A stretch of 32,000 nucleotides of DNA from Paramicrosporidium saccamoebae KSL3 (GCA_002794465.1 MTSL01000014.1:30001-62000); one strand, 5' to 3'. Shown: positions 2,660-32,000, counted from the first letter of the stretch. Notes: generated from the letters alone by a model not told the origin. A program made the numbers and translations.

Positions 2660-3955
2660 ATGAGCAATAAAGACGAAGCCCTTCCTGTAGAAAAGCAAGG
2701 GACTGGTGGCTTCTTGTCCAGCGCTGTTAACCTGCTAAAGTCGATTATCGGCTCGGGCATTTTGGCCCTGCCGGCTGCGTTTGCTTCCGTGGGAGCCGTT
2801 CCGGGACTGCTTTTGCTTGCGGTCGCTGCCTTTGTCTCTGCCTTTGGTCTGCAACTGCTCATCAAGGCAACCGATCGGGTCACCTCCAAGGGGCTCGTTG
2901 CTCCTCGGACCGCAAATTTTTCTGCCTTGGCAGGACCCACCTACCCGAAACTGTGGGTGCTATTCGAGGCAGTGGTGATGGTCAAGTGCTCTCTGGTGGC
3001 CACAAGCTACCTGACTATTGCAGGGTCAGTCATGACCGACATCTTCAAGACACTCACCCCCTCTGCATGGCCTATCATGTTCAGCCAGGTATTCTGGGTG
3101 TCGGCCATTGCCGGCTTGATCGCCCCCGTAGTGTTTATGCACAGAATGGACTCGCTAAAATACACTAGCTTTCTCGGTCTGCTCGGAATTGCTTATCTCT
3201 TTGTCCTGTCTGTGGTTTTGTTCTTTGTGCATAATGATTCTGTTGGAGAGAGCTTTTCAAACATCAACATGTTTGTCCCTTTCAAATTCAGCTCTGTATC
3301 TAGCTTCTCCGTCTTTGTCTTTGCCCTGACATGTCACCAGAATGTAAATCTCTGTCTGCTCCCTGATCTTTAGATTTTCCTCATCCATAACGAAATCAAG
3401 GATACTCGTCCGAGTATTATGCTTCGTCTGATCACTATTTGCGTCTTTGCATCCTTTGCCATATATAGCATCTTTTCCTTGGCCTTTTTTGGCGTATTTG
3501 GAAGTGGGGTGAGTGTGAATGTCATCAAGAGTCTTCCCGACACCGCCTGGTCTACAACCGTTGCTCGCATTCTATATTCGCTGATTATGATCTTTTCCTA
3601 TCCGTTGCAGACTTTTCCGGCTAGAGCGTCGCTTGTCAAGCTTTTGGAGGGAGTTGTAGACCCAACCGGCAGGTCAAAACTTCTCCTCCATGTAATAGCG
3701 ACGGGGTGCATTATAGGGTTCACCTGGACGATTGCAGCCTTTAAAGTCCCCATTGACATTCTATTCTCACTTGTTGGGTGCACTGCCGGACCCGTGATCT
3801 GCCACTTCTTGCCCGCAATGTTTTGGTTAAAATTAGAAGAGGACAAGCCGATGACCAAGGGCAAAGCTGCCTGCTGGGCGCTCATTGCCTTTGGTGTTGT
3901 TGCCACCATTGTTCCATTAGTAGCCCTTATAGTCTCATTAACGAGGAGTCTTTAA
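2660..3955 (+). CDS. Amino-acid transporter, Aa_trans/AVT5-7-like, 421 aa; exons 2660-3343 and 3374-3955 (30-nt intron)
   Basis: Motifs NLLKSIIGSGILALP, RMDSLKYTS, FSYPLQ. Splicing GTAAAT..TTTAG (3344-3373) joins the two ORFs to give TCHQN|IF in frame. Confidence 0.9.
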
Positions 3956-5684: not shown

Positions 5685-7213
5685 ATGGTAGAGAAGGCTG
5701 AATATGATTGGACTGGCCAATATACAAGAACACCCATGCAACCGAAAGCAGCACACTTGATGCAACCATCCGGACCCGTGCTAGTGACCACCCAGTCTGC
5801 CAGTACTGAAAATTTACTCTCTGACAGTTCCCATGGCAGTAGTCCCGGGGGACTCCACTACTCCGTACCCTCGTCGCCCAAGAGTATAGACGGCTTCTCC
5901 GACACCGACAATGACAGCCCCATTGAGACACATATACCAAATGCCGGATTTTCTAGCTGTAGCATCAACCTGCTAAAGACAATCATGGGAGCGGGCATTC
6001 TGGCCATGCCGTCGGCGTATGCTGCGCTGGGCTACGTACCCGCTACTTGCATGATTCTCCTCGCCGCCGCCTTTGCTGCCTTTGGACTGCAGCTGTTAGT
6101 AAACTCTTCTCAATACATTGGACGGGGTGCGACTGTGAACAAATTGGCAAATTTGACCTATCCGCAGGCGTCCATATTGTTTGACATTGCAATTGCGCTA
6201 AAGTGTTTTGGGGTGGCCATTTCGTATCTCGTGGTAATTGGGGATGTGATGCCGAGCATTGTGGTGGGAATGGGCTATGACGATCCCATCTTTGTTAGCC
6301 GGCGCTTTTGGCTGCTGGTCTCGGCCATCCTCATGGTGCCACTTGCCTTTCTAAAGCGCATGGATTCTTTAAAGTACACCAGTTTCGCTGGATTGCTCAG
6401 CGTTGTCTATCTGGTGGGGGTTGCCTTTTGGAATTTTTACAAGCCCGATGCCGTGCGGCCTCCTCCCAACGCAGGAATGGAAGCCTTTGTGGACTACAGC
6501 CCCGCGACCCCAAAGTCTTTTTCCGTCTTTGTCTTTTCCTTTACATGTCATCAGAATGTATAAGCATGCTATTTTGAGATGCTAATGTGTAGATATTTCC
6601 CATTCAAAGGGAGGCCGTGGACAATTCGACCCCCTTCCTCAACCGCGTCATCAATTTTTGTGTTTGCGTTGCGGTTGGCTTATATTTTACATTCTCGCTA
6701 GTCTCGTACGCCAATTTTGGTAGCATTGTAGATGGAAACATCTTTGGCACTTGTATATCCTCTATGCTGAATAACCATTTAGATCCCAAAAAGAACATTG
6801 AGATGATTATTGCACGTTGTCTCTTTGCCTTGCTCTCGGCATTTTCGTATCCGCTACAGACTTTTCCTTGTCGGTCCTCACTAGAACATTTGCTTCCCTT
6901 GTCTTCAGCCAACAAACGGTTATACAGTCGTCCAATCCATATCCTCTTGACCCTCGCCATTCTCTTCGGCACCTATGCAGTGGCCTTTTGTGTAAAAGAT
7001 CTGGTCATTGTGTCCGAGGTTATTGGGACGCTGGCTGGAATTCCCATCTGCTACCTGTTCCCCTTTCTCTTTTACTTTAAGCTCTCTGAAGGACGGGGAT
7101 GGACGGCCAAAAGGATTGCTTCCGCATGTATGGCAGGGTTCGGAATAGTTGCCATGATGGTTAATTCAGTGTCGCTAGTCTATACTATGCAGAGCTACCT
7201 TGGAGTCGTGTAG
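5685..7213 (+). CDS. Second Aa_trans/AVT5-7-like transporter, ~487 aa; exons 5685-6557, 6593-6752, 6783-7213 (introns of 35 and 30 nt)
   Basis: NLLKTIMGAGILAMP, KRMDSLKYTS, FSYPLQ. Intron 6558-6592 (GTATAA..GCTAAT..TAG) restores TCHQN|IF. Removing 6753-6782 restores GNIFGT-YP; this second intron is less certain because it is in frame and stopless. Confidence 0.88.
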
Positions 7214-18162: not shown

Positions 18163-18215
18163 GACACAGATCTTACTGTCCTCAAATACTCGACTAATCT
18201 ATCCCCACCACTCTA
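18163..18215 (+). repeat. Partial third copy (C) of the dispersed repeat, abutting the TATA box of the 18246 gene
   Basis: 18163-18190 matches 23-50 at 23/28; 18175-18200 matches 102-127 at 22/26; shared ccactcta at 18208-18215. Confidence 0.7.
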
Positions 18216-18220
18216 TAAAT
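18214..18220 (+). promoter_or_regulatory. Candidate TATA box (TATAAAT) of the 18246 gene
   Basis: Consensus match about 25 nt upstream of the ATG; position only, no functional data. Confidence 0.45.
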
Positions 18221-18245: not shown

Positions 18246-18722
18246 ATGTCAATTACATTTCTTTTGCTCATTGGTTTCCTCTCGGCGATTGCGAGCGGGT
18301 CTTTTCTGCAGCGCGTTGCCGTCCAGACCTCTGGCGTCCGGACCTCTGGTGTCCGGTTGAGACAAAAATTTGTGACACGCCTTCCGCCTGGCATAATATT
18401 TACTCCATATTGCGTCTGGTTCATGGATGAACATGCCAATCTAGAAATCTCAGTAATGTCGAGTAAAGTTAAAATTGCCGGTCAGGGTGTTTTCGATTTG
18501 GGTGTGTTTCGAAATTATCAATTGCTCCCAGAAGGCACTAAGAAGGTAATTGTTGGCGACGAAGTAGTGGTTGCCATAAGCAAAAATCCATCGGATTCCA
18601 AGAAATTTCGCCGGAGCGCGCGTCGTGAACTGAGCAAGGGTGTAGAGGATATTAACTTGGACCATCCCGACATGATATTTCTAGCTTATGAAGTCGAATC
18701 TGAACCTAGAATATCCGAATAA
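18246..18722 (+). CDS. Small secreted protein, family member 1 (158 aa)
   Basis: Signal peptide MSITFLLLIGFLSAIASG; family core FRNYQLLP..VGDEVVVAI; ends ISE*. Internal 15-bp duplication (TSGVR x2) at 18326-18355. Confidence 0.8.
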   Translation: MSITFLLLIGFLSAIASGSFLQRVAVQTSGVRTSGVRLRQKFVTRLPPGIIFTPYCVWFMDEHANLEISVMSSKVKIAGQGVFDLGVFRNYQLLPEGTKKVIVGDEVVVAISKNPSDSKKFRRSARRELSKGVEDINLDHPDMIFLAYEVESEPRISE

Positions 18723-19254
18723 GCGACAATTAATACACAGGAACATTCTGCTTGATTATTTGATGTCTGCTCGAGTACCGTTACTTTGATTGACATGATG
18801 CTCTCCAATCTGTTGCAAAGTGGAAAGGGCACCATAACTTTGTTCAGAGCTAGGTTATTAAAATACGGGCCCAGGTGCTTTGTAGAAGCATCGAGATGCA
18901 GCAAAAGACAACCACAGGCACAAGGAGCTTAATGGCTGGTCATTCGACTTTGAGTATGGCACTTTATGTCTAGGCTAATGCATGCGAATGTAGCCTCACT
19001 ATTTTTATTGATTGGACGCTGCCAAATGACTTACAAATCATGTAATGTAGAGGATTGACTAGTTGAGTATCTGAGTATGGTTACCTAGTTTGGAGAATAT
19101 ATAATTGGGACGATCTATGAAAGATAATGAGATCTATATCTTTATCATTTTAGGATTATTACGTTACTTATGACTCCATAAAAGGGCCGTTGGGCTGACA
19201 GTGAAGGAGACCTCATCTTGTCTCTTCCGTCTGACAAAGTCCGTGGTATCAAGA

Positions 19255-19749
19255 ATGATTAAGCTGTTCGCTGGACAGGGAAACTCCGTCAAGTCTGCAT
19301 TATTTCTATTTCTTTATGCCTTTTTCACTATTGTAAGCGGGTCCCATCTGTTTTACACTCATTCTGTCCGACTCGGACGTCTGTACGCAAAATCGTTCTC
19401 GGGTAACGTATATTTTGGTCCCTATGAAACCGTGCTCGTTGATGGAGGTCCAGCTCGCGTAGGTCTCTTGATTGACGGAGACCGGTTAAAAATTTTTGGC
19501 GATCAATTCGAGTGCCGTGTATTCCGAGGACAGGAAATGTTACCAGAAAGCTGGGATATAAAAGTGGAGGGTGGTGACGTAGTAGTGGCTGCTATTCTTA
19601 GCAAGTATCGTCAGGATCCTATCACTCCTGCCACCCTGAGACTAATGTTTGAAATGTACGCAGAATCGAAAGACGTAAGCCGTGTTGGGCTGAGGGGAAG
19701 GAGCTATTTAGTTATTCCTATTGAAGCCGTACCCGGTATATCTGAGTAA
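19255..19749 (+). CDS. Small secreted protein, family member 2 (164 aa from the first ATG)
   Basis: Hydrophobic ALFLFLYAFFTIVSG; RLGR; CRVFRGQEMLP..GGDVVVAAI; ends ISE*. The ORF-track start at 19201 is a GTG. Confidence 0.8.
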   Translation: MIKLFAGQGNSVKSALFLFLYAFFTIVSGSHLFYTHSVRLGRLYAKSFSGNVYFGPYETVLVDGGPARVGLLIDGDRLKIFGDQFECRVFRGQEMLPESWDIKVEGGDVVVAAILSKYRQDPITPATLRLMFEMYAESKDVSRVGLRGRSYLVIPIEAVPGISE

Positions 19750-19884
19750 ATATCCATCAATTCACGATCACCTATAATGTTGCGCCTGTGTCTAAGCAAA
19801 CTCGTCGTCATGGACTGATACAAGTATCACGACTAATAGCAATCGATACAGAATACCCCATATCGGGTATAGTGACTTGCACAC

Positions 19885-19891
19885 TATAAAA
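19885..19891 (+). promoter_or_regulatory. Candidate TATA box (TATAAAA) of the 19919 gene
   Basis: Consensus match about 28 nt upstream of ATG 19919, similar spacing to the 18246 gene. Confidence 0.45.
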
Positions 19892-19918
19892 TGAATGTCA
19901 TCGGGTGTAGAAATTATC

Positions 19919-20365
19919 ATGAGAACCGACCTCTTTCTGTGGATTGGTGCCTTTCTAAGTTGTGCGAGCGGCGCAGGATTATTGCATCACGCTAGACGAT
20001 TTGGGGGTTCCTGCAAAACAAGTTACGGGACTAGTGTCGAATTACATCCCACTGCGGTCAGGTTTTCGAACAATCACTCTACCGCCTATGTCAAGTTGGA
20101 GTCAAATAAGCTGGAAATTTTCAATGACGGTGATGTCCGCTGTCATGTGATCCGAGGCGATCAGAAATTATTAAGTAGAACCGAACTGGAAATTGGCGAC
20201 AAAGTAGTGATTGAGATTGGTCGTGAATTTTGGGGAATAGAGGAAGTTCACGAGTACATGCGCGAGATATTGGACACGGAAGAGAATGTAATGAGCCTAA
20301 GCCGCAATAAGCAATGCTGGAGTACTCTAGTTGTTCCAATAGTAGCTGGATCCGCATCTGAATGA
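19919..20365 (+). CDS. Small secreted protein, family member 3 (148 aa; an in-frame upstream ATG exists at 19895)
   Basis: Signal peptide MRTDLFLWIGAFLSCASG; FSNNHS; CHVIRGDQKLL..LEIGDKVVIEIG; ends ASE*. Confidence 0.8.
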   Translation: MRTDLFLWIGAFLSCASGAGLLHHARRFGGSCKTSYGTSVELHPTAVRFSNNHSTAYVKLESNKLEIFNDGDVRCHVIRGDQKLLSRTELEIGDKVVIEIGREFWGIEEVHEYMREILDTEENVMSLSRNKQCWSTLVVPIVAGSASE

Positions 20366-20637
20366 ATACTGGCTAATACATGATAACTTGTGATGGCACA
20401 CTGTCAAAGGCGAGATATTAAACACGATGGTGATGTGCAAATTGACTTTAGCAAAAGATGCAGTGTCACCGAAAAAACACACTTTAACGTGCTAAGAGGC
20501 ATAAGATACAGACGTGTTGACTTGGATCTACTTTCAGAAACAAGTTTACTTGGATCTACCCACAGAACAGGTTTAGTTATAGATATACTCTCACAAACAG
20601 ACACAAGATAAAAACATGTTTACTTACAGATCTACTC

Positions 20638-21916
20638 TCAGAAGCAAAAGAGTCGACGCAGCCAACTCCGACGCGGCGTCTCCTCCGCCAGCGGAGTGCG
20701 GATGGCCGGCAGGTTCCGGTCCGTACGTACCTGTGTCAATGGGATGTGGTTGGGCACCAACCCGGGACTCTCGTAGTGCAGACTGCGATGCGACTTTGTT
20801 TCTGGCGGCTACACGGTTAACATACAACTCCAGCTACCAGTTTCTCCCAGTCGAGTGGCTCATTGGGATCCTGCTGGTCATAGACAGTCTTGAACCAGCT
20901 CCGACAAACTTCATAATCGGGTTCCTCCTCAAAGGCCAGTCGTCTCGTATAGGCCACATACTGCGCAAATTGCTCGGGGTAGTTCATGCAAAGATCCTCA
21001 ACGTGAATCATCTGCTTCTTCTGACCAATTTTCTCATACTTTTCCCGATTATCGCGAGCCTTGAGGCCCTGCCAGGGAAGGGAGCCCCGCAGAAAGTACA
21101 TGAACACATTTCCCAGGGCCTCCATGTCGTCGCGACGGGACTGCTCACGACCCAAATGCGTGTTAATTGACATGTAGCGGGCTGTGCCGCTCAGTGACTT
21201 TTTCTCCCGATAGGGAATGTGCTGTTTTGTCTGTGGATGGACATAATGTTTGGCCATCCCAAAGTCGACGACATAGATGGTCCGATCGTCTTTTTTCTCA
21301 GCCCGTCCCAATAAGAAATTATCCGGCTTAATGTCCCGATAGATTAGTTCCTCACGATGAATAGCCTGAACCCGCGTAATCTACAGTCAACACCCTCATC
21401 ACTGATTACCATTTGGATGGCCAAGAAACTGGTTGTCTTGACGGAAAATCGCCGACCACAGCGGTCAAAAAGATCCTCCAGACTGGGTCCCAGATAGTCC
21501 AGGATCATGTAGTTAAAGATGGCCTCCTGGCCGTAATGGTAGGCTTGGGGAATTCCCTTGAGCAGTTCAGAATCCAGTCCTTCCTTTCGTCGCTCGTTGA
21601 TTCGGGCATTGAGGTGTTTGTATGCGCGGTATTCGTCTCTAAGTTGGGGTGCAGCGCTCTTGCGCGACTCCTACCAGTCAGACTTGGGGGAACGGAATAC
21701 AAATTTAATGGCCACCAGCTCTGTAGCCAAATCAGTCTTTCCTAACCATCAACGAGCCGGCAAGGGATACCGAGGTATATGATGCCAAAGGAGCCTTCTC
21801 CTATTTTGCGCAACACTTCATAGTGCTCACCGACCTTTCCAGGCCGCTCGCCTGTCAAATCTTCACTCTTGGCGACGGGCCTACCGGTTAATACTGCGGA
21901 GGGGCTACATTAACAT
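20638..21916 (-). CDS. Casein kinase I, YCK/CK1-gamma type, ~377 aa; exons 21916-21909, 21880-21771, 21741-21701, 21670-21410, 21380-20838, 20808-20638 (introns of 28, 29, 30, 29, 29 nt)
   Basis: The spliced product reads continuously: [71 protein letters not shown]. Tail ends [11 protein letters not shown]. The terminal exons are less certain than the core. Confidence 0.92.
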
Positions 21917-22032
21917 TCAGGCCACAGAGGGTTCGACAATGGAGACGTGCGTCCCGTCACGCCACAATGCCGGTCAACCAATCAAACGAAAAGTCATTTA
22001 TTATACGCAATCTATGTCGTCGAAATGTAGAG

Positions 22033-22092
22033 TTATTGAATGGAACATTGAGTGTGCTATTGAGTGGACTATTGAGTGAGTTATTGAGGAGG
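22033..22092. repeat. 5 x 12-bp degenerate tandem repeat in the divergent CK1/TFC3 intergenic region
   Basis: ttattgaatgga acattgagtgtg ctattgagtgga ctattgagtgag ttattgaggagg. Confidence 0.8.
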
Positions 22093-22188
22093 GTACTGGG
22101 AAATTGGGAAATTTCGACAGATTCATCCACATGCTAATCGGCTTACCATATCTGATTCATAGTCCAACCAATCAAACCATATCCGACC

Positions 22189-25100
22189 ATGGATGGAATC
22201 CTTCGCGCCCTGCAGGAAGCCGTCATCTGTCAAGGCGGTCCCATTGGTAGAACCCGTTGTAGTCGCTAATGGACAGGCCTTCAAATAGACGAGTTTTATG
22301 AACTGGCCGAGAAGAGATATCAAGAGCTGTTAGACACTGAACTAACCGAGGCGGGCCGGAAACAGCTCTGGAGAGAAGCGGGTCAATGCGGACTCTTTTT
22401 ATTTGTACCCGCAGAGTATATTACTGACGTTATAGATGCAAAACAACTGTAATGACGTGGATAAACGCACCAAGAGCAGTGGGACTGGGAACGGCGACTC
22501 TGACAATCTTTTTAGTATTGCTTGCCCTCCTTACGAGTTGGAGAATGTTTCAATAGTGTGTTCAACAGAGGAACGTTTGAATTTTTATACAAAAGGTCGG
22601 CCGTTGCGTCTCAACGAGCTGCAAATCCGGGCTCTCGAAATTATTGCCAAAACAATGCGACGTGGCATCACACAGGCCGAGGTGGCAAAACAATTATCAC
22701 TGGACCCACGCAGTTTCTTTCATCAGCTCAAAGCGCTGTTGGAATACCATCTGGTGACACGCATTCCCGTGTCATGTAACCGGTCGTTTACATATCTACT
22801 GCATTTGAACCGTCTGGCCCCAGAAGACGAGACTTGTGCTGCAGAGGGGGAGGAAACGACAGTGACGCCAAGTGTCGTGTCGGTGCGGTCACGGATTGTG
22901 GAACTTTTGGAGACGGCTCCGGGGAAGAAGTTGCCCGCTCAGGAAGTGTATCGGCTGCTGGGTGGGCCGCAGTTTGTGCGCATTTATCGTCGCAATATTT
23001 CTTGGTTGGTCGAGCATGGTTTTATTGAATGTATTGTGGCTGAAGAACTGGGTGCATTTAAGCGGATTTTGAAATTCAAAAAGAATCTCACCGACCTGGC
23101 CCGCAAACCCGTCAAGCCCGTCGTTCCCGTTGAGGAAAATGCACCATTACAGGAACTTGTCACTGGTGCCTCGTTGGAGCGACAAATCCGCGATTATATT
23201 GACGCCAGCGGCGGGACGGGCCGCACTCTGACTGAGGCAATGCATGACTTTGGCATTGGTCGAAAGTTGGCCTACCGCATTGGGGATCGACTGACCAATG
23301 GAAAGTACTTTAGTGACTCGGATGTGGTCAAAGTACCCGAGTTTTCAGGAAAGGAGCGACGCCATCGGTTTTTCACTACTGACGGTCAAACTCGCGATAC
23401 TGCTGATGTGGTGCTGTTGGGCTCGATGGCGCGTGATTCGGTCAATCGAGCGAGACGACTAAAGGCGCTATTGCAAATTGTGTCAGAGGCGGTGATTGTG
23501 GAGAGTGGAAAGCCCCTAATCAACGATCTACAGCAACGGTTAAACGAACAAGAGTTTTCCATGGACGGCAAGACGCTCAAACGGATGATAAAGTACCTCG
23601 AGGACGAGGGACTAATTCGGACAGTGGTGGTAGTGCTGGCTGGCGTTAATAGGACAGTGTTGATAAAGGCCAATCTTGCCTCCAATGATCCTCAGGTATT
23701 GGAATTTATTGAAAAACTCAAAAAGAACCGCGCTGACCTTGCTGTGTTACCCCCCGACACTGTTTCAGAGCCTGCCAAGGAGCACAAGTTTAAGATGCAA
23801 AAATACGGCTATGTATTTGGGATCCTTCAGCGGTGTCGTCGACTTCATTCCTATTTAGTGCAAGAAGTGATCCTGCCACGGTCTAATGGCGAAGACCCTT
23901 GGATCTGTGAAACACTCAATACCCTGTTCCGAGAACTGCCCCTAAGTGTCTTTCTCAAGATTATTGGGGTGGGTGCCATTTCCACTCGTTTGTCCGACTT
24001 CCTTGCCGAGCCCAGTCATCATGATTTGACGGTGGAGGCCCTGCCGCCGGCAATCAGAGAGGAGCTTCATCGACGTCGGATAGACCGACACAAGACTGTG
24101 ATAAAGAAGCTGATGGAGTTGTTGGTGCAATTTGGTTTGGCCATCCCCGATGTCCGCTATCCCAGCGTGGCCTTTCGACTTCCCTATCAATACAAGCTTG
24201 TCCAAAAAGTAAACATTATGGACATTGGCACCGGCTCGGTTCTGAAAAGCGTAGATTTAGCCTCGCCCAGGGCAGTGGATGAGTATTGGGACTGGCTTGC
24301 AAGTCTGGCAGAGCAATCAGTGTCGGTACACCCGAGTCTGGCCATGGCGTATTCACTGGCAACACGAAAGGACAGCTGGCAGTCTGTCTCTCCCTATAGC
24401 AAAGCCTTTAAAAAGGCCCTCCGACGCATCATCTCACAATCCCTCTCTCCCCAAGCCCTGGAGGAGGAGATGGGGAAGATTCAGGACGATTTTGAAATTG
24501 ACCGTGAAACTCTGATGCGAGCATATCAGGAACTGGAGCAAGAGTCGCAAAAGACCCGAACGAGACGGCTGGAGGAGCGGCGGGCGAAAAAGGTTGTCAG
24601 TCGTACTCGAGATATTCTCCCCAGAGCCGTCGAGAGCGACGAGGATCCTAATGAGCGCAGTAGACGGGCAGTATTACAGACATTCTCTGCATCAGAATTG
24701 GATTCGATCCGACGCTGTTTTTTCATTTTGCAATATCCGCGATTCCGTCTGCCCACGGGCAGCTGCCAATGGGGTCTCATTGAGACGCTCTACCGGGATG
24801 GCCTTATTCCGGGCACTCGTCAGGGCGATGAGATCCGCACCATGATTCAACGCTTTCTAGTTTCCTTTGAGCAGAGCAAAAAGATGCGGCGTGTAGAATT
24901 GACATTTCGCAGCATTGAGGCTCTCATCAAAGTCGGTGCTATACCTCCCATCCCCGCTCTGGAGGACAGTGTCGAGTCCAATTTCGCCCACGTGTTTGTA
25001 TATTTCCAGGACTTGTTTGGAAGGATTGGTGAAATCAAAAAACATTGGTGGTCAAAGCAGCGTGGAAAATGTATTTCAGAGTCAGTACCTTTGTTTAGCG

Positions 25101-25948
25101 AGAAATCTACAGTCCTGGTTGAGCCTACACAAACCAATGCCCCTACTGTACAATCCATGGCGCTTGTGGATGAGGGACCAAGTGCCTTTGATCCGGAGCA
25201 GAATTGGCGGAAAATGTCACGCATCCAACAATTTCGACATTTTCTTGAAAAGTCGTCCATTGTACCCTTGGCCAAGCCTTTGGAGATTTCTAGTGGCTAT
25301 GCTGCAGAATGGACAGCCATTAAAAAGATTCTCGCCATCCCAACCAGACAATATGACGCAACAATTTCCAAAGATTATCTGCAGCGCTACTCACCGGAGC
25401 GGGTTGATGCCGCCGTGCAGCAAATGGTTGCTACGGGTTTGCTCACCAAAGGCGAATCGGCCCGCTTTAGACCGCGCATTCCGGGCGGAGAATTCCTGGT
25501 AAATGAAGCATTTGTTGCTATTATTGATGGCTGCGAGTGGAATCTTGACAGTGATGGAACCGAATTATGGCCGTTGATGGTGCAGGCGAGTCGGGATCAG
25601 GTGACCTTGTCGTTTGAAATGGCCAGAAGTGTCCCACAACTAGTCGTCTCCTCTATACCCACAAGAAGCATCAGGTCTTTGACTACAGCAATCAACAATA
25701 ATCTTGACCATGGCTCTGACTCGGTTTGGTTTACCATTGACGGAACTCTGAGATCCGATGTTTTTTGTGCTGCCTGCAAGTTTGTACATGAACAAATCTT
25801 TAGCCATCCCGGCATTAGTGCCGTCCATTTAAAAGAATCTTGCTTCCCATTTCTCAGCGAGGAGGAAGTCACCATCGTGCTACAAGTCTTGCTGGAAGCA
25901 GAATTTCTAGAGGTCGAAGAGGGACTAGACAACTATTATGCACTCTAA
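22189..25948 (+). CDS. TFC3: TFIIIC B-block-binding subunit (Tfc3/tau138/GTF3C1), ~1232 aa; exons 22189-22246, 22277-22404, 22436-25948 (introns of 30 and 31 nt)
   Basis: B-block domain LQIRALEIIAKTMRRGITQAEVAKQLSLDPRSFFHQLKALLEYHLV. Upstream exons join in frame through GTAGAA..GCTAAT..CAG and GTACCC..ACTGAC..TAG. Overall size is typical of the family. Confidence 0.85.
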
Positions 25949-26015
25949 CCGCCCGCTGTAAAGAGCCCTACTATTGTATTTTCACATCTTTAATGAAATT
26001 CTGATTCTAAACTAT

Positions 26016-26789
26016 TTAGTCGCTGTCATCACTGTCGCTAGCATCGCTGTCACTAGTATCACTGTCACTAGCATCACTATCGCTGTTCTCAGCAACGTCT
26101 TCATCCATTTCCTCATCCATGTCCTCTTCTTCTCCAGATTCCAGCTCATCGTCATATTCTTCCTCAGGCTGCTCCGTAATTACCTCGACACCCTCATCAT
26201 CGTCTTCACTGTCGTCATAGGTGGCCACAGGCATCTCCATCAGTCGGGCAAAGTCTTCTTGTTCTCCCCGGCCGTTTACTTGTCCCAGCATTAACTGTAT
26301 CCGACCCCGCAACATGACCATCCGTCGGTGTGTCTTGGTTCGTGCCTCTATGAGTTTTTGTAGCGGTTCCACTCGACTGGGAAGGTCAGGTACCGTCAAC
26401 AAATAGGCCGCATGTTCAGTCAGCAACAGTCGCAGCCACGGGACGAGCTGCATGGCGCGCATCGGACGACGTTGAATACGCACAACAAGTGCATCAAGCA
26501 GCGGCAGAGCATAAGTGGGCGGCATACGGCGCAGCGAAGAGCGTATTAGGTCCGTGTCCGTGTTGCTCAGGGCATTCTCCAAAAGGTCGCTGTCTGAAGA
26601 GGTGAGGCTCTGCGTGAGAATGTCGCAAAGCGAGTGCACGCGCGGTGTAGGAAGCTTCTGGAATGCCGCTGTCGGGTCTATAAAACCATCCGGAGACGGC
26701 GTCGTGGGAAAGGGCTCTGTCAATATTTCGTCCTTTGTCATCCTGTCTGAATCTGAATCCCCGGTCCGGGTGTATTGGCTGGTGACCAT
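26016..26789 (-). CDS. UTP5: Utp5/WDR43-like SSU processome protein: Utp12/Dip2 domain plus acidic tail, no WD40 repeats (257 aa)
   Basis: SLCDILTQSLTSSDSDLLENAL...LVPWLRLLLTEHAAYLLTVPDL...RGRIQLML is the C-terminal domain of Utp5/WDR43. Confidence 0.85.
   Translation of the reverse strand: MVTSQYTRTGDSDSDRMTKDEILTEPFPTTPSPDGFIDPTAAFQKLPTPRVHSLCDILTQSLTSSDSDLLENALSNTDTDLIRSSLRRMPPTYALPLLDALVVRIQRRPMRAMQLVPWLRLLLTEHAAYLLTVPDLPSRVEPLQKLIEARTKTHRRMVMLRGRIQLMLGQVNGRGEQEDFARLMEMPVATYDDSEDDDEGVEVITEQPEEEYDDELESGEEEDMDEEMDEDVAENSDSDASDSDTSDSDASDSDDSD
26028..26084 (-). repeat. Coding 15-bp repeat (SDASD/SDTSD) in the UTP5 acidic tail
   Basis: + strand: atcactgtcgctagc atcgctgtcactagt atcactgtcactagc atcactatcgct. 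Confidence 0.85.
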
Positions 26790-26862
26790 TATTGTCCATC
26801 CGTGGATCTTTCTAATCTGGTGGTCTTTCTCGACTTTCCATCAGTAGACTCACACTCACGCA

Positions 26863-27107
26863 ATGGAGAGCATTGACCCGGAATGTACCAAACTCAAACA
26901 GAAATACGAGGCATGCTTCTATACCTGGTATTCTGAGAAATTCCTCAAGGGAGATACCCGCGACGAGTGTGCTGGACTGTTCAAAGAGTATCGCGCCTGT
27001 CTTGATGTACAATAATGATTATTGACTATATGATGTAGAGGACACTAAAGGCCAAAAATATTGATCAACTAATAGAAGAGCACTACAAGGCCGGCGAGAC
27101 ACCTTGA
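26863..27107 (+). CDS. MDM35: Mdm35/TRIAP1 twin-CX9C mitochondrial intermembrane-space protein, 70 aa; exons 26863-27006 and 27039-27107 (32-nt intron). Absent from the ORF track.
   Basis: MESIDPECTKLKQKYEACFYTWYSEKFLKG...ECAGLFKEYRACLD|RTLKAKNIDQLIEE; two CX9C motifs and the WYSEKFLKG signature. Confidence 0.93.
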
Positions 27108-27447
27108 ATAAACGCCTTGTGCACTGAATGTAGTGGGAGGACTATTATTCTTGTCCTGCTGTTGGCACGGGTCGTGGTGGCTTTATAATGTCACACCCAC
27201 ATTCAAAGTTCACGGTTAGATTGTGGAAGGCATTGATATGACCAAGGAGGAATGCAATATTAGCCTTACAAAGTCTTTGCCCCTTCCACAGCTACTCCCA
27301 TCAAGTGGGGGCAAAGAGTTTAATACTCGACATGGCACTGTAATTTTTCACAATTATACTACTACCATCCTGTCTTCCTCGAGTTGAATGTGCGCATGGA
27401 ATTACTAGACTCGATTATTATTCTGTCACAGAAACCATGGATCTTTA

Positions 27448-27502
27448 TTATAAACTCGTTATAAACTTGTTGTAAACTGGTTATAAACTGGTTATAAACT
27501 TT
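27448..27502. repeat. 5 x 11-bp tandem repeat in the 3' flank of family member 4
   Basis: ttataaactcg ttataaacttg ttgtaaactgg ttataaactgg ttataaacttt. Confidence 0.9.
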
Positions 27503-27523
27503 ACAATACCAATTTAGCCATTC

Positions 27524-27997
27524 CTACAGCCTGGCTAAATCGTGGGGCATATCGAAACCGTGATAATCAAAAACGACAGACATTATGAGAACGTCTGGAA
27601 TTTCGTGATCAGAAATGTCGCGATATGTGACTTGCTTGGACGTAGGACTCGCAAGCGCCTTCTCCATCGCAGTAGCCTTCAACAGCCAATATGGGGTTGC
27701 TTTCCTCGCCACTGCTATCACTACAGTGTCGCCCACTTCAAGATAAGCAGTTTCCTCTCTCCCAACCATCGCCTCGTTCTCACGAATCACGCAAACCGAG
27801 CCTGCACCAGTGAGGGAGATCCGATTATCACTCATAACAATGCTGACGCAGCTATAAGAGTTGCAGATCAGTTTGCTCAAAGTATTGGGGCCGCTATTCC
27901 AATGGAGTCCCGAGGACATAAATTCGATCTTGCCCAGCTGCAACTGGCTAGCATAGGATACCGCACAAAGCAACGAAATGATGATTGTTGCATGCAT
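27524..27997 (-). CDS. Small secreted protein, family member 4 (157 aa)
   Basis: Signal peptide MHATIIISLLCAVSYA; QLGK; CVIREN..LEVGDTVVIAV; about 63% identical (100/158) to member 5. Confidence 0.85.
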   Translation of the reverse strand: MHATIIISLLCAVSYASQLQLGKIEFMSSGLHWNSGPNTLSKLICNSYSCVSIVMSDNRISLTGAGSVCVIRENEAMVGREETAYLEVGDTVVIAVARKATPYWLLKATAMEKALASPTSKQVTYRDISDHEIPDVLIMSVVFDYHGFDMPHDLARL

Positions 27998-28395
27998 AGT
28001 ACTACAACTCCGATCCTACGTCGTCTTATAGTGCTCTAATTTGCCATTTTGAGCACCTGCCAACGCCATTTGTCCAGCGGTGCTTTCAAATGCTGACGGT
28101 GAGCGCATAAAAACTTTTGGTTGAAATCCCGAGTCTGTAGCTTTACCATCTCACACTAACGGCAAACAGTTGTTATGTGATATTGGTCTTGCAAATCCTT
28201 GTCCTCTCCCTAGTCGCTACCGTCAAGCGGATAAAGAGTCCAATACCCGACATATTACTTTAATTCTCACAATGCTACTACCATCGTGCTGAGTGCGCAC
28301 ATGGAATTACCAGACTTTAGCGCTACCTTGTCAAAAAAGTCACGAGTCTTCATTATAAACTTTTTGAAGCTTTACAGTACTAATTGTAGCAATGT

Positions 28396-28872
28396 TTACA
28401 GCTTGGCGAAAGCTTGGGGCACGCCAAAGCCGTTAGGATTAGAGACTACAGGCACTATGAGAAAGTCGGGAATTTCCTCTTCGAAAATGTCGCGATATGT
28501 GACTCCCTTGGTTGTGTTAGGACTTTCAAGCGCCTTTTCTATCGCAGCGGCCTTTAGTAACCAATTTGGAGTCCCTTCCTTTGCCACTGCTATTACTACA
28601 GTGTCCCCTACTTCAAGATGCGCATATTCCTCTTTCCCAACTATCACCTCGTTCCCACGAACCACGCAAATCGAGCCTTCACCAGCGAGGGCGATTCGAT
28701 TACCAGTCATAATGATGGTGACACACTTGTAAGGATTGCAAATTTTTTTGCTCCAGCGATTTGGGCCTCTAGTCAAGTGGAGTTCCGAAGACATGGATTC
28801 GATCCTGCCCAGCTGCAACTGGCTGGCATGGGATAGCGCACAAAGGAACAAGATAATGATTACTGCATACAT
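28396..28872 (-). CDS. Small secreted protein, family member 5 (158 aa)
   Basis: Signal peptide MYAVIIILFLCALSHA; QLGR; CVVRGN..LEVGDTVVIAV; tandem paralog of member 4, with shared 3' flank sequence. Confidence 0.85.
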   Translation of the reverse strand: MYAVIIILFLCALSHASQLQLGRIESMSSELHLTRGPNRWSKKICNPYKCVTIIMTGNRIALAGEGSICVVRGNEVIVGKEEYAHLEVGDTVVIAVAKEGTPNWLLKAAAIEKALESPNTTKGVTYRDIFEEEIPDFLIVPVVSNPNGFGVPQAFAKL

Positions 28873-29467
28873 GGCACTATAATGTCGCGTAGTGGAGGGA
28901 ATACTACGGACTTTGTCACCACTGTTTATCCGGGAGGCGAGAGAATTCTTTTATCATAAAGTACACCTTATTCCCATCGTTTTCTCGGATCTGATCGGGT
29001 CTATCCGGAGATGCGATCGTTTCTAGGGATTGGTCAGGCCGCGTCAAATTCCCTCTACGTCATTTTGACGTTTCCCACTATTGCGCGCTACTTCTTTCCT
29101 TCTTGTAGCTGGGTCATTTGGAACAAAGGACCCATACCATTTCACGCTAACAGCTATTATTAAGGTAGTAACAGGTGTACTGCATAGTGAGGATCATCAC
29201 GAATGGAATTGTTTGGCATAAGGAAACTCAACTATTGCCTTTTAGTAATTGGATCCCTCACGTTCTCGACTAGACTCAGCCAGCCATTCCACTACCTTAC
29301 ACCATCACCACCAGATCTCAAAATAACGCCGAGATTTACCCAAGATTTCAATCATCACCAATTCATAAACGTCTAATTATCACGTAGCTGGGGACAAATA
29401 GAAGCACTCGAAAATGCAGTATCAATGGTGAAAAGTCACAGACAGAAATGCATCATTTATTATCAAT

Positions 29468-29899
29468 TTACTCGGCTCTAAGGGAAATAGTAACGACCTC
29501 CCCCGCCGCACCATCCACTGATTTCTCACTAAAGTTCCCAAGTATTTCCTCTAAACAAGGCTTTGTCATTCTGGGCGTTCCGCCCAAAACAATCACTATC
29601 AAGTCATCGGCTTTCGGTGCACTCTCCTCTGGCAATCGAGTGAGATTTCCGTGCTCGCGTCGGTACATATAACAAACAACGGCGCCATCATAGTAAACTT
29701 GCAGTTTCTCTGCTGTCAATCTGATTAGCGCACAGTTATTGTGAACCTGGAGCCCAATATAGTTAGGATTCCAGCTCGCTTGAACCGGCGAACCCTTACG
29801 TGCAGTAGGTTCTCCGAGTCGAAGAATGGAGCGCGGAAATCTTGATGCGCTTGCAAGCTTTAAAAGGGCACATAGAAATACAAGAAAGACTGCCTTCAT
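29468..29899 (-). CDS. Small secreted protein, family member 6 (143 aa)
   Basis: Signal peptide MKAVFLVFLCALLKLASA; LRLGE; VHNNCALI; ADDLIVIVLG; ends AE*. Confidence 0.88.
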   Translation of the reverse strand: MKAVFLVFLCALLKLASASRFPRSILRLGEPTARKGSPVQASWNPNYIGLQVHNNCALIRLTAEKLQVYYDGAVVCYMYRREHGNLTRLPEESAPKADDLIVIVLGGTPRMTKPCLEEILGNFSEKSVDGAAGEVVTISLRAE

Positions 29900-30370
29900 G
29901 GAGAGTTGCCGTCTTGTACGTCGCGTAGCAGGTCAAGTGGGATGGAACACGCCACGACGCTTCTGTCGAGCAGGTGCAAATTTTTTCATTATCATTAAAT
30001 GTACTTTGATTGGCCTGCCAAATTTGATTGCTTAATCTCCTATCAGGTTTCAGTGTAGGACCTATGGAAATCGTCCCAGCACTTTCTATTCAAATGCTGT
30101 TGTGTATTGGCTAATGATTATTCATGAACAATCCACATCCTCATCAGTCCATTCTCTTGCCTTGTCCTTCTAAAGAGTCGAACAAACCCACAATGTCTCA
30201 TTGGCAATTGCTACCAGATCTCAGATTATCATCACAATTTGCCCAAGATCTTGATCTTCATTAGCTCCTCAGTGTCCAATGTTCACGTAGCTGGGGGCGA
30301 ATGGAGGCACTCGAAAATTCAATATCAATGTCGGAGAATCACAGGCAGCAGTGCATCATTTATTATGGAT

Positions 30371-30802
30371 TCACTCGCCTATAAGGGGAATAATAACGAC
30401 CTCTGTCGCCGCACCACCCAGTGATTTTTTACTAAAGTTCCTAAGTATTTCCTCTAGACAAGATTGTGACATTCCAGGAAACCCGCCCAAAACAACCACT
30501 AGCAAGTCATCGGCTTGGATTGTACTTTGCTCTGGCAATCTAATGAGCCCTTCGAGCTCGCGTCGATACGTACGCCAAAGGATAGCACCCTCATAGCTAA
30601 TTTGCAGTCCCTTTGGTACCAATTTGATCAGCGCAAAGTTGTCGTGAACCTGAAGCTCAATATGGTCGGAAGTCTTGTGCACTTTAACGGCTGAACCGTC
30701 ACGTACAATAGGTCTTCCGAGCCGAAGACCATAGCGTCCAAATCTTGATGCGCTTACAAACTTCAATAAGGCGCATATAAGCACGAGGAGGATTGTCTTC
30801 AT
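30371..30802 (-). CDS. Small secreted protein, family member 7 (143 aa)
   Basis: Signal peptide MKTILLVLICALLKFVSA; LRLGR; VHDNFALI; ADDLLVVVLG; ends IGE*; 56% identical (80/143) to member 8. Confidence 0.88.
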   Translation of the reverse strand: MKTILLVLICALLKFVSASRFGRYGLRLGRPIVRDGSAVKVHKTSDHIELQVHDNFALIKLVPKGLQISYEGAILWRTYRRELEGLIRLPEQSTIQADDLLVVVLGGFPGMSQSCLEEILRNFSKKSLGGAATEVVIIPLIGE

Positions 30803-30859
30803 GAAACGTTGTCGTCTTGTGCGTCGCGTAGTAGGTCAATCACTACGGAACACGTCACA
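30803..30859 (-). promoter_or_regulatory. Conserved upstream block of the triplicated genes (homologs at ~29900-29955 and 31694-31749), containing CTACGCGAC
   Basis: 52/57 identity to the block upstream of member 8; non-coding (in-frame stop and a 1-nt indel). Confidence 0.65.
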
Positions 30860-31261
30860 ATGCTTCGGCCAAGCAAGGGCGAACCTTTATTACCATTAGG
30901 TGTACTTTTATTGGTCAGTCCGATCTGATTGTATAATACCCTACTCAAATTCTCAGTGCAGAGTCCATGGAGCATCTGCCATCGCTTTACTATTTAAATG
31001 AGAGTAGCATGCTATTTCATATTGACTAATGAGTATTCATAAGCAATCCACATTCTCACCAGTTCATAATCCTGCCTTATCTCTTTAAATAATCGACCAA
31101 ACTCATTGCTACCTATTGGCAATTGCTACCTGATCTCAGAATAGTACCGAGATTTATTCAAGATTCTAATCATCACTAACTCATTGACTTCTGATTATCA
31201 CGTAGCTGGGGACAAATAGAAACACTTGAAAACTCAGTATCAATATACTATTTATGCAGAC

Positions 31262-31693
31262 TTACTCGCCTATAAGGGGAATAGCGACGATCTCTGCCGC
31301 CGAAGCATTCTCTGATTTTTCACCAAAGTTTGTAAGTATTTCCTCTAGACAGGACCTTGTCATTTCAGGAGACCCACCCAAAATAACTACCAGCACGTCA
31401 TTGGCTCGATGTTCACTATTTTCTGGCAATCTAATGAGTTTTCCCAGCTTGCGGCGATACATACGCCAAAGGACGGCACCGGTAGAATGAACTTGCGCTC
31501 CCTTCAGTGTCAATTCGACTAGCGCACGGTTTTCGCGCACACGGAGCCCAACACGGTGAGGATTCCAGTTAGCTTTAACAGGTGAATCCTCACGTATAAT
31601 AGGTTCTCCGAGCCGAAAAATGTAACGTGGAAATCCTGATGCAATTGCAAGCTTTAAAAGAGCGCATAGAAGCACAAGAAAGATTGCTTTCAT
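31262..31693 (-). CDS. Small secreted protein, family member 8 (143 aa)
   Basis: Signal peptide MKAIFLVLLCALLKLAIA; FRLGE; VRENRALV; ANDVLVVILG; ends IGE*. Confidence 0.88.
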   Translation of the reverse strand: MKAIFLVLLCALLKLAIASGFPRYIFRLGEPIIREDSPVKANWNPHRVGLRVRENRALVELTLKGAQVHSTGAVLWRMYRRKLGKLIRLPENSEHRANDVLVVILGGSPEMTRSCLEEILTNFGEKSENASAAEIVAIPLIGE

Positions 31694-31809
31694 GAAAGTT
31701 GCCGTCCTGTGCGTCGTGTAGTAGGTTAATCACTACGGAACACGTCACAGCACTTCGGTCAAGCGGGGCCGAACCTTTCACTACCCTTAAATGTACTTTT
31801 GACAGACCA

Positions 31810-32000
31810 AATCTGATTGTGAAATTTCCTAATCTAACTGCGGGGCCTCCTAATCTGATTGTGAACCCCCTAATCTAACTGTGGGGCCTCTTAATCTGAT
31901 TGTGAACCTCCTAATCTGATTGTAAAACCCCTTAATCTGATCGTAAAATCCCCTAATCTGATTGTAAAATCCCTTAATCTGATTGTGAAGCCCCTAATCT
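31810..32000. repeat. 20-21-bp minisatellite running off the window edge (at least 9 full units, two unit types)
   Basis: aatct recurs at 31810, 31831, 31852, 31872, 31893, 31913, 31934, 31955, 31976 and 31996. Confidence 0.95.

Follow-up and report, generated by a model that had tools for sequence, protein, structure and literature searches.

In a window of 32,000 nucleotides (nt) of the Paramicrosporidium saccamoebae KSL3 genome, the whole stretch of DNA that was analyzed (MTSL01000014.1:30001-62000), we characterized a family of short genes that was expanded through local tandem duplication and whose products are probably secreted. P. saccamoebae, which is placed in Rozellomycota, lives as a parasite inside the nuclei of amoebae and is the sister lineage of the Microsporidia (PMC5701793). 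An earlier note on this window had described eight of the genes as a lineage-specific family of exported proteins with a degenerate FHA-like pattern, possibly acting as effectors, and the organism's way of life agrees with the parasitism that this idea implied. The genes, their homology and their restriction to the lineage were confirmed, and the FHA identity was rejected on the evidence of sequence and predicted structure. In the explanation that we favor, with a probability of about 55%, the family would encode secreted, non-catalytic binding modules at the parasite-host interface, and its members are candidate effectors.

A tandemly duplicated gene family and its public models

The members, here called m1 to m9, are listed with their positions in the window; the coordinate in the record MTSL01000014.1, a contig of 89,609 bp in assembly GCA_002794465.1, is the window coordinate + 30000 (m6, for example, lies at 59468-59899 on the record). 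Expectation values (E) are those of hhalign profile-profile comparisons with the rest of the family, and L001 denotes the sequence that continues beyond the window.

18246-18722, plus strand: m1, 158 aa, signal-peptide-like N-terminus MSITFLLLIGFLSAIASG; E 7e-8; public model P0004, 99 aa, internal Met start
19255-19749, plus strand: m2, 164 aa from the first ATG, signal-peptide-like N-terminus ending ...FFTIVSG; E 8e-8; public model P0009, 70 aa, a C-terminal fragment with an internal Met start
19919-20365, plus strand: m3, 148 aa (156 aa if the ATG at 19895 is used); E 2e-8
27524-27997, minus strand: m4, 157 aa, C-terminus -ARL, 64% identical to its paralogue m5; public model PSACC_00173 (P0002), 138 aa, with an upstream exon spliced across the signal peptide and N-terminal region
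28396-28872, minus strand: m5, 158 aa, C-terminus -AKL; public model P0008, 104 aa, internal Met start
29468-29899, minus strand: m6, 143 aa; public product P0001
30371-30802, minus strand: m7, 143 aa; public product P0007
31262-31693, minus strand: m8, 143 aa; E 8e-5 for m6-m8 together
207-620 nt past the window end (L001 7280-7693), same strand as m4-m8: m9, 137 aa; public model of 85 aa, internal Met start
27379-28872, minus strand: tandem units of m4 and m5, two of about 875 bp, flanks included
29310-31778, minus strand: tandem units of m6, m7 and m8, three of about 900 bp, each comprising gene and flanks, with a spacing of 903 and 891 nt

The eight open reading frames (ORFs) of the earlier note, of 143-164 aa, are uninterrupted and lie where it had placed them, and m9 follows just past the end of the window. 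The genes form two convergent blocks (m1-m3 and m4-m9) with three housekeeping genes between them, encoding a protein kinase, a TFIIIC B-block subunit and a Utp12-domain protein. The first ATG of m2 sits within a GTG-initiated ORF that begins at 19201. A six-frame hidden Markov model scan recovered exactly m1-m8 in the window with m9 just outside it, and no extra copies or fragments beyond m9 were found in the window and the 7.9 kb past it. Adjoining m9 there is an ORF of 140 aa with a signal-like start (L001 6647-7069, 831-1253 nt past the window end), possibly a degenerate tenth member (m10), whose resemblance to the family is by eye and without statistical support (hhalign E 0.026, HMMER not significant). 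In the public annotation m10 is joined to the 3' end of Gpi16, the frame of which ends with a transmembrane segment and a stop codon at L001 6626.

Comparison of the profiles indicates that m1-m8 are truly homologous and belong to a single family, as had been proposed: every subfamily, left out in turn, recovers the rest at E values of 6e-10 to 8e-5, at an identity between subfamilies of 13-29%. Invariant throughout are the arginine of VxR and the aspartate and valine of GDxVV, and one glycine is nearly so. In the R-L-G-[RKE] motif, which follows the signal peptide, the fourth residue is R, K, E, G or Q. The motif appeared to be absent from m1 because a duplication encoding TSGVR-TSGVR directly precedes its position; this is an in-frame repeat of 15 nt in 2.5 copies (18320-18356).

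The recent history of the family can be read from the tandem units. The coding sequences of m6-m8 are pairwise 74-75% identical with zero indels or stops, and the identity of their flanks is 55-77%, the flank alignments containing 24-48 gap columns. Identity is about equal at the three codon positions (67-71% at the first, 76-80% at the second and 74-78% at the third). The ratio of nonsynonymous to synonymous substitution rates (dN/dS) is 0.63-0.86 for the m6-m8 pairs, 0.45 for m4/m5 and 0.18-0.41 for pairs of orthologues. Because the coding sequences have stayed free of indels at about 25% divergence and show this pattern of dN/dS, we regard the genes as functional and the paralogues as diversifying or under relaxed constraint. 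The protein change of the recent duplicates, close to the silent rate, agrees with a conserved scaffold under selection that is either diversifying or strongly relaxed.

Public models of full length exist only for m3 and m6-m8. In those of m1, m2, m4, m5 and m9 the N-terminal part is truncated or mis-spliced, and the signal peptide is lost. The N-terminal parts that they omit align among the paralogues and with the full-length environmental orthologues described below, and show a dN/dS of 0.16-0.68; the omitted region of m4 is conserved in its orthologues, with a dN/dS of 0.39-0.45. These parts are taken to be coding because they are under purifying selection, and the long ORFs to be the better models because, in addition, the omitted parts align with relatives. 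Most of the family would escape a screen of the deposited proteome for secreted proteins or effectors, since the signal peptides are absent from these models.

To establish the distribution of the family, several searches were combined. A Pfam scan of m1-m8 at E<=10 gave no family match, the two chance hits being OB_RNB and Dna2 Rift (E ~0.15). HMMER, run exhaustively over 1.84 billion cluster representatives, returned 11 matches, namely six products of this locus (P0002, P0004, P0006-P0009), two environmental orthologues and three bacterial proteins. The environmental orthologues are P0005 (of m4/m5) and P0011 (of m9), from the JGI metagenomes 3300042203 and 3300042204, and a word-index search added a further orthologue of m4/m5, P0003, on a 1.3-kb contig of GCA_020047435.1. 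The three bacterial matches (P0010, P0012, P0013) are giant repeat proteins and were judged spurious, their scores being sums of four to five short repeat matches. Searching the PDB sequences with the profile of the family produced chance matches only; the best of these, the MoeA MoCF-binding domain (E 0.07), was rejected, as it has a different alpha/beta fold and aligned on a 'VGDVVV' string. A pattern scan of metagenomes with the m4/m5 subfamily alignment gave 212 matches, none of which was confirmed. Within the annotated P. saccamoebae proteome the family occurs at one locus only. Because the searches return just the locus products and a few environmental orthologues, the family appears to be confined to Paramicrosporidium and very close relatives. 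The genome paper, which mentions mRNA-seq data, makes no mention of secreted proteins, signal peptides, effectors or gene families (PMC5701793), and in the literature we found no later description of the family and nothing on the accessions of the environmental relatives.

Export signals and a possible role at the host interface

The N-termini of m1-m8 consist of a short n-region, usually charged (that of m1 is uncharged), followed by a hydrophobic core of 10-14 residues, with a best 10-aa Kyte-Doolittle mean of 2.1-3.7. Small residues occupy the -3/-1 positions, reading from m1 to m8 ASG, VSG, ASG, SYA, SHA, ASA, VSA and AIA. By these heuristic sequence criteria signal-peptide features were found in all nine members and in all three environmental orthologues, in agreement with the signal peptides that had been described on the first eight, and m1-m9 are probably secreted. 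Neither a second hydrophobic segment nor an HDEL/KDEL end was found in m1-m9 or the three orthologues, and the family has no conserved cysteines. We rejected a reading of the post-signal R-L-G as an RxLR/PEXEL-like element, as neither consensus fits and the motif forms the first beta-strand of the predicted structure, where the predicted local distance difference test (pLDDT) is ~85.

The C-termini of one subfamily have a feature of their own. The last three residues are -ARL in m4 (27524-27532), -AKL in m5 (28396-28404) and -ARL in both environmental orthologues of m4/m5 (L002 1067-1075; L003 775-783). These tails fit the consensus [SAC][KRH][LM] of the type 1 peroxisomal targeting signal (PTS1), with a chance expectation of ~0.3% per protein, and in the model of m5 the tail (residues 132-142) is predicted to be disordered (pLDDT <50). 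On a protein with a signal peptide, a PTS1 could be read solely in the cytosol of another cell or in a form that starts internally.

In the favored explanation, a cleavable N-terminal signal peptide would route the proteins through the secretory pathway to the outside of the parasite, the mature product being a globular domain of about 125-140 aa. The family of at least nine genes would have grown via the tandem duplications of ~0.9 kb, the copies then diverging fast, and the non-catalytic domain, exposed to the host or displayed on the parasite surface, would bind something at the host interface. This interface would be the nucleoplasm of the host (Saccamoeba), unless a vacuole membrane intervenes; because P. 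saccamoebae is intranuclear, a secreted protein would plausibly meet host nuclear contents. Secretion itself, exposure to the host, a binding function and effector action in the host are what we infer.

Several points weigh against this explanation. Secretion is read from heuristic features of the sequence, and the lack of conserved cysteines is unusual for extracellular proteins, although it would fit proteins delivered to a compartment of the host that is reducing. A dN/dS below 1 is no proof of positive selection, and relaxed constraint accounts for the values equally well. The likeness of the predicted fold to PP2C phosphatases, set out in the next section, is sub-threshold (no Foldseek match at E<=1e-3, template modeling (TM) scores mostly 0.3-0.45, hhalign probability 1-3%), and the two structural models are not independent, because one shallow alignment of 10-11 sequences underlies both. 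Finally, spore-wall, polar-filament and other parasite-internal secretory proteins would look alike in sequence.

The last point is an alternative in its own right, in which the products would be structural or parasite-internal secretory proteins (of the spore wall or polar filament, associated with the plasma membrane, or in the lumen of the endoplasmic reticulum or vacuole) that take no action in the host. Signal-peptide-like N-termini and restriction to a lineage are just as typical for proteins of the microsporidian spore wall and polar tube, and the orthologues are under clear purifying selection. The predicted domains, however, are compact and globular, without repeats or a low-complexity, Pro/Lys-rich or Cys-rich composition; the near-neutral protein divergence of the young paralogues (0.63-0.86) would be unusual for structural components, and there are at least nine diverged copies. 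We consider this alternative unlikely, though one to be reckoned with.

Predicted fold and alternative identities

Structures were predicted with AlphaFold2 for mature m5 (from an alignment of 10 sequences; mean pLDDT 83.6, predicted TM score 0.79) and mature m3 (11 sequences; mean pLDDT 77.6, predicted TM score 0.73). The two models have a common order of elements, with about nine short strands, a helix of 10-13 residues, a loop and, at the end, a long strand. In Foldseek searches of the PDB neither model had a match at E<=1e-3. Ranks 1-27 for m3 were all PP2C-fold proteins (among them PstP, tPphA, SpoIIE, RssB, PppA, RsbX, PPM1K and SidD), with a probability of up to 0.99, a query-normalized TM score of 0.26-0.53 and E values of 0.017-0.8, and for m5 the PP2C fold took six of the top nine ranks. 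Over all PP2C matches the root-mean-square deviation was 6-9 Å and E was at least 0.015. In the viral library BFVD, giant-virus PP2Cs gave the highest TM scores (0.40-0.42). To judge by the models, the nearest solved fold is weakly the beta-sandwich core of PP2C, with most helices and the catalytic site gone.

The family was also compared with PP2C at the level of profiles, using Pfam-verified PP2C/SpoIIE alignments of five and then eight sequences. The match had an E of 0.051 with five sequences (score 18.9) and 0.018 with eight (21.0), at a probability of 1-3%; these scores were reached by 0/150 and 0/120 column shuffles, a reversed family alignment scored 13.1, and the control comparison of RsbX with PP2C gave an E of 1.9e-9. 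No Pfam match to PP2C, PP2C_2 or SpoIIE was found at E<=10, and no PP2C was among the matches of the family profile to PDB sequences. With the threshold for alignment set permissively, 91 columns are collinear with PP2C and contain three elements in the same order: the family hairpin 'G-x-G-x-x-c-V-x-R' falls on 'G-D-S-R-x-x-l-x-R', 'L-E-v-G-D-x-V-V-h-A' and the helix on 'l-e-p-G-D-x-l-L-L-c-S-D-G' and helix, and the last strand on 'D-N-i-T-v-v-v-v'. Where PP2C has the metal-binding aspartate of 'SDG', all members have A, S, L or G in this alignment, the N-terminal motifs 1 ('ED') and 2 ('DGxGG') have no counterpart in the family, and the sole possible remnant of motif 11 ('DN') is an acidic residue (D or E) ahead of the last strand in 7/9 members. 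Enzymatic activity is very unlikely, and membership of the PP2C family was not established, the profile match being suggestive, not significant.

Of the known families, PP2C/PPM (PF00481, PF13672, PF07228; tPphA, PstP, SpoIIE, RsbX) thus provides the best structural neighbours of both models and shares with the family, in the same order, a 'G-x-x-...-R' beta-hairpin, a 'GD-hhhh' strand with its helix and a C-terminal strand. By contrast, the domain of the family has 125-142 aa and a single helix, whereas PP2C/PPM is a four-layer alpha/beta/beta/alpha structure of at least 200 residues with two helical layers; there is no flap, the metal aspartate is replaced, the 'ED' and 'DGxGG' motifs are undetectable, the profile match is not significant, and the proteins are predicted to be secreted.

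A more specific version of the favored explanation follows this likeness further, and takes the proteins for PP2C-derived pseudophosphatases, a PPM/PP2C fold minus helical layers, flap and metal site, secreted to work in the host nucleus as a decoy or adaptor that binds phosphoproteins. It would account for the lead of the PP2C fold in both PDB lists and of the giant-virus PP2Cs in BFVD, for the three collinear elements, for a profile score that rises with more sequences and lies above all shuffles, and for an order of strands and helix that equals PP2C minus alpha1/alpha2 and flap when compared with the topology of PstP. Export of a parasite PP2C to the host nucleus is, moreover, known from Toxoplasma PP2C-hn (PMC7793252). 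Against it, all statistics are sub-threshold, neither the Pfam scan nor the search of PDB sequences finds a PP2C, even the smallest PP2Cs are about twice as large as the domain, the N-terminal metal motifs are unalignable, convergence on a generic beta-sandwich would be a possible origin of the likeness, and loss of the active site gives no grounds for expecting phospho-specific binding. We regard this version as doubtful. That a minimal scaffold of this kind makes up the diversifying secreted host-targeting set of an intranuclear parasite, with the PTS1-like -AKL/-ARL of m4/m5 and their orthologues addressing host peroxisomes, is a long shot.

The FHA reading of the earlier note, in which exported pseudo-FHA domains would mimic phosphothreonine readers, was assessed with seven Pfam-verified FHA domains of cellular proteins (six PF00498, at E 1e-12 to 1e-19, and PNKP, PF17913), of which six were aligned as a test profile and PNKP was kept apart as a control. 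The Pfam scan of the eight members at E<=10 gave no FHA match. In hhalign the family matched the FHA profile with a probability of 0.28% and an E of 0.22 over 23 columns, covering only a generic 'L-x-x-G-D-x-[IV]' hairpin that falls on the C-terminal hairpin of FHA, whereas the divergent true FHA domain of PNKP gave an E of 0.0019 over 86 columns. The family score was reached by 6/150 column-shuffled alignments, which is chance level. The signature residues are not there either, as S-x-x-H occurs in m3 only (S-N-N-H), N-G in no member, and G-R is not conserved in the family; 'FSNNHS' and 'MDEHANL', which formed part of the ordered FHA-like pattern of the earlier note, are not conserved columns, and this pattern dissolves into the few invariant residues named above. 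Because 'G-R' lies just 5-25 residues past the predicted cleavage site, there is no room for the FHA strands beta1-beta3. With the m5 model the best FHA structure, 1yjm, came at rank 17 (E 1.5, TM 0.24), and with the m3 model, which had been considered the best FHA case, no FHA structure was among the best 50 matches against the PDB. The 11-stranded all-beta sandwich of FHA is not matched, both models having the helix of 10-13 residues. FHA (PF00498) and the family have in common a beta-rich module of ~100-140 aa and the hairpin motif; they differ in the absence of profile similarity beyond it, in the phosphothreonine-binding residues and in the helix. The lineage-specific, exported half of the original proposal is reasonable and is retained, and its FHA half, now highly improbable, was discarded on the combined evidence of Pfam, hhalign, shuffles, signature residues and models.

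That the genes are chance ORFs or decaying pseudogenes without function is scarcely credible, for although half of the members are only partially annotated publicly and dN/dS is high among the young copies, there are nine intact ORFs of similar lengths, m6-m8 are free of indels and stops beside indel-rich flanks, and orthologues under constraint exist in three other samples.

Surroundings of the locus and comparison with known systems

The other genes of the window are eukaryotic housekeeping genes, encoding topoisomerase II, Rab-GDI, a Sla2/HIP1R-like protein, kinases and amino-acid permeases. Several smaller features were recorded in and between the genes:

950-1522: ORF for a single-pass, signal-anchored membrane protein
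2660-3955 and 5685-7213: amino-acid-permease-like paralogues on one strand, 3 kb apart, each of two ORFs that are presumably split by an intron
26016-26789, minus strand: Utp12-domain protein, with an acidic Ser/Asp repeat tail DSDASDSDTSDSDASDSDDSD at 26016-26126 made of 12-15-nt tandem repeats
27448-27500: 11-nt tandem repeat TTATAAACTGG, directly downstream of the m4 stop codon, 4.8 copies, 90% matches
31810-32000, continuing past the window: minisatellite in the m8-m9 spacer, with units of 20-21 nt and a double unit of 41 nt, at least 4.6 copies, 80-84% matches
18209-18217, 19883-19891 and 28032-28040 (the last on the minus strand): CACTATAA[AG] box, ~35 nt before the ATG at which the long ORFs of m1, m3 and m4 begin

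The CACTATAA[AG] box is a possible core promoter element; it was not found ~35 nt upstream of m5-m9, and a search for shared motifs found no upstream 8-mer common to at least four members.

The family offers a confidently predicted fold without a significant solved counterpart. Among sequenced organisms none is more closely related to Microsporidia than Paramicrosporidium, which lives in the host nucleus, and the family is also a compact candidate set for how an intranuclear parasite of the fungal lineage talks to its host. Small secreted orphan families in tandem are common in intracellular parasites, which makes the finding useful rather than surprising, and the family, a new orphan, is of a familiar kind.

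Its closest parallel is found in the Microsporidia, where host-exposed proteins belong to species-specific, fast-evolving families that bear signals (PMC5423893); the 'large gene families' of Nematocida (Reinke et al. 2017, PMC5423893) are host-exposed, and some of their members get into the nucleus of the host. Both systems occur in obligate intracellular parasites of sister lineages, and both combine N-terminal export signals with the lack of homologues outside a genus-level lineage, local paralogous expansion and fast divergence. No sequence relationship between them was detected, and the Paramicrosporidium family differs in having nine copies at one locus that encode short, single compact domains. 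Host exposure is experimental in Nematocida, whereas in the Paramicrosporidium family it is predicted from the sequences. A second parallel is offered by Toxoplasma, which secretes the PP2Cs PP2C-hn and PPM3C, the former reaching the host nucleus (PMC7793252). Here the likeness lies in the PP2C fold, the signal peptide and export by an intracellular parasite; the Toxoplasma proteins are full-length, catalytically competent enzymes of an unrelated phylum, whereas the Paramicrosporidium family, if related, would be a truncated non-enzyme.

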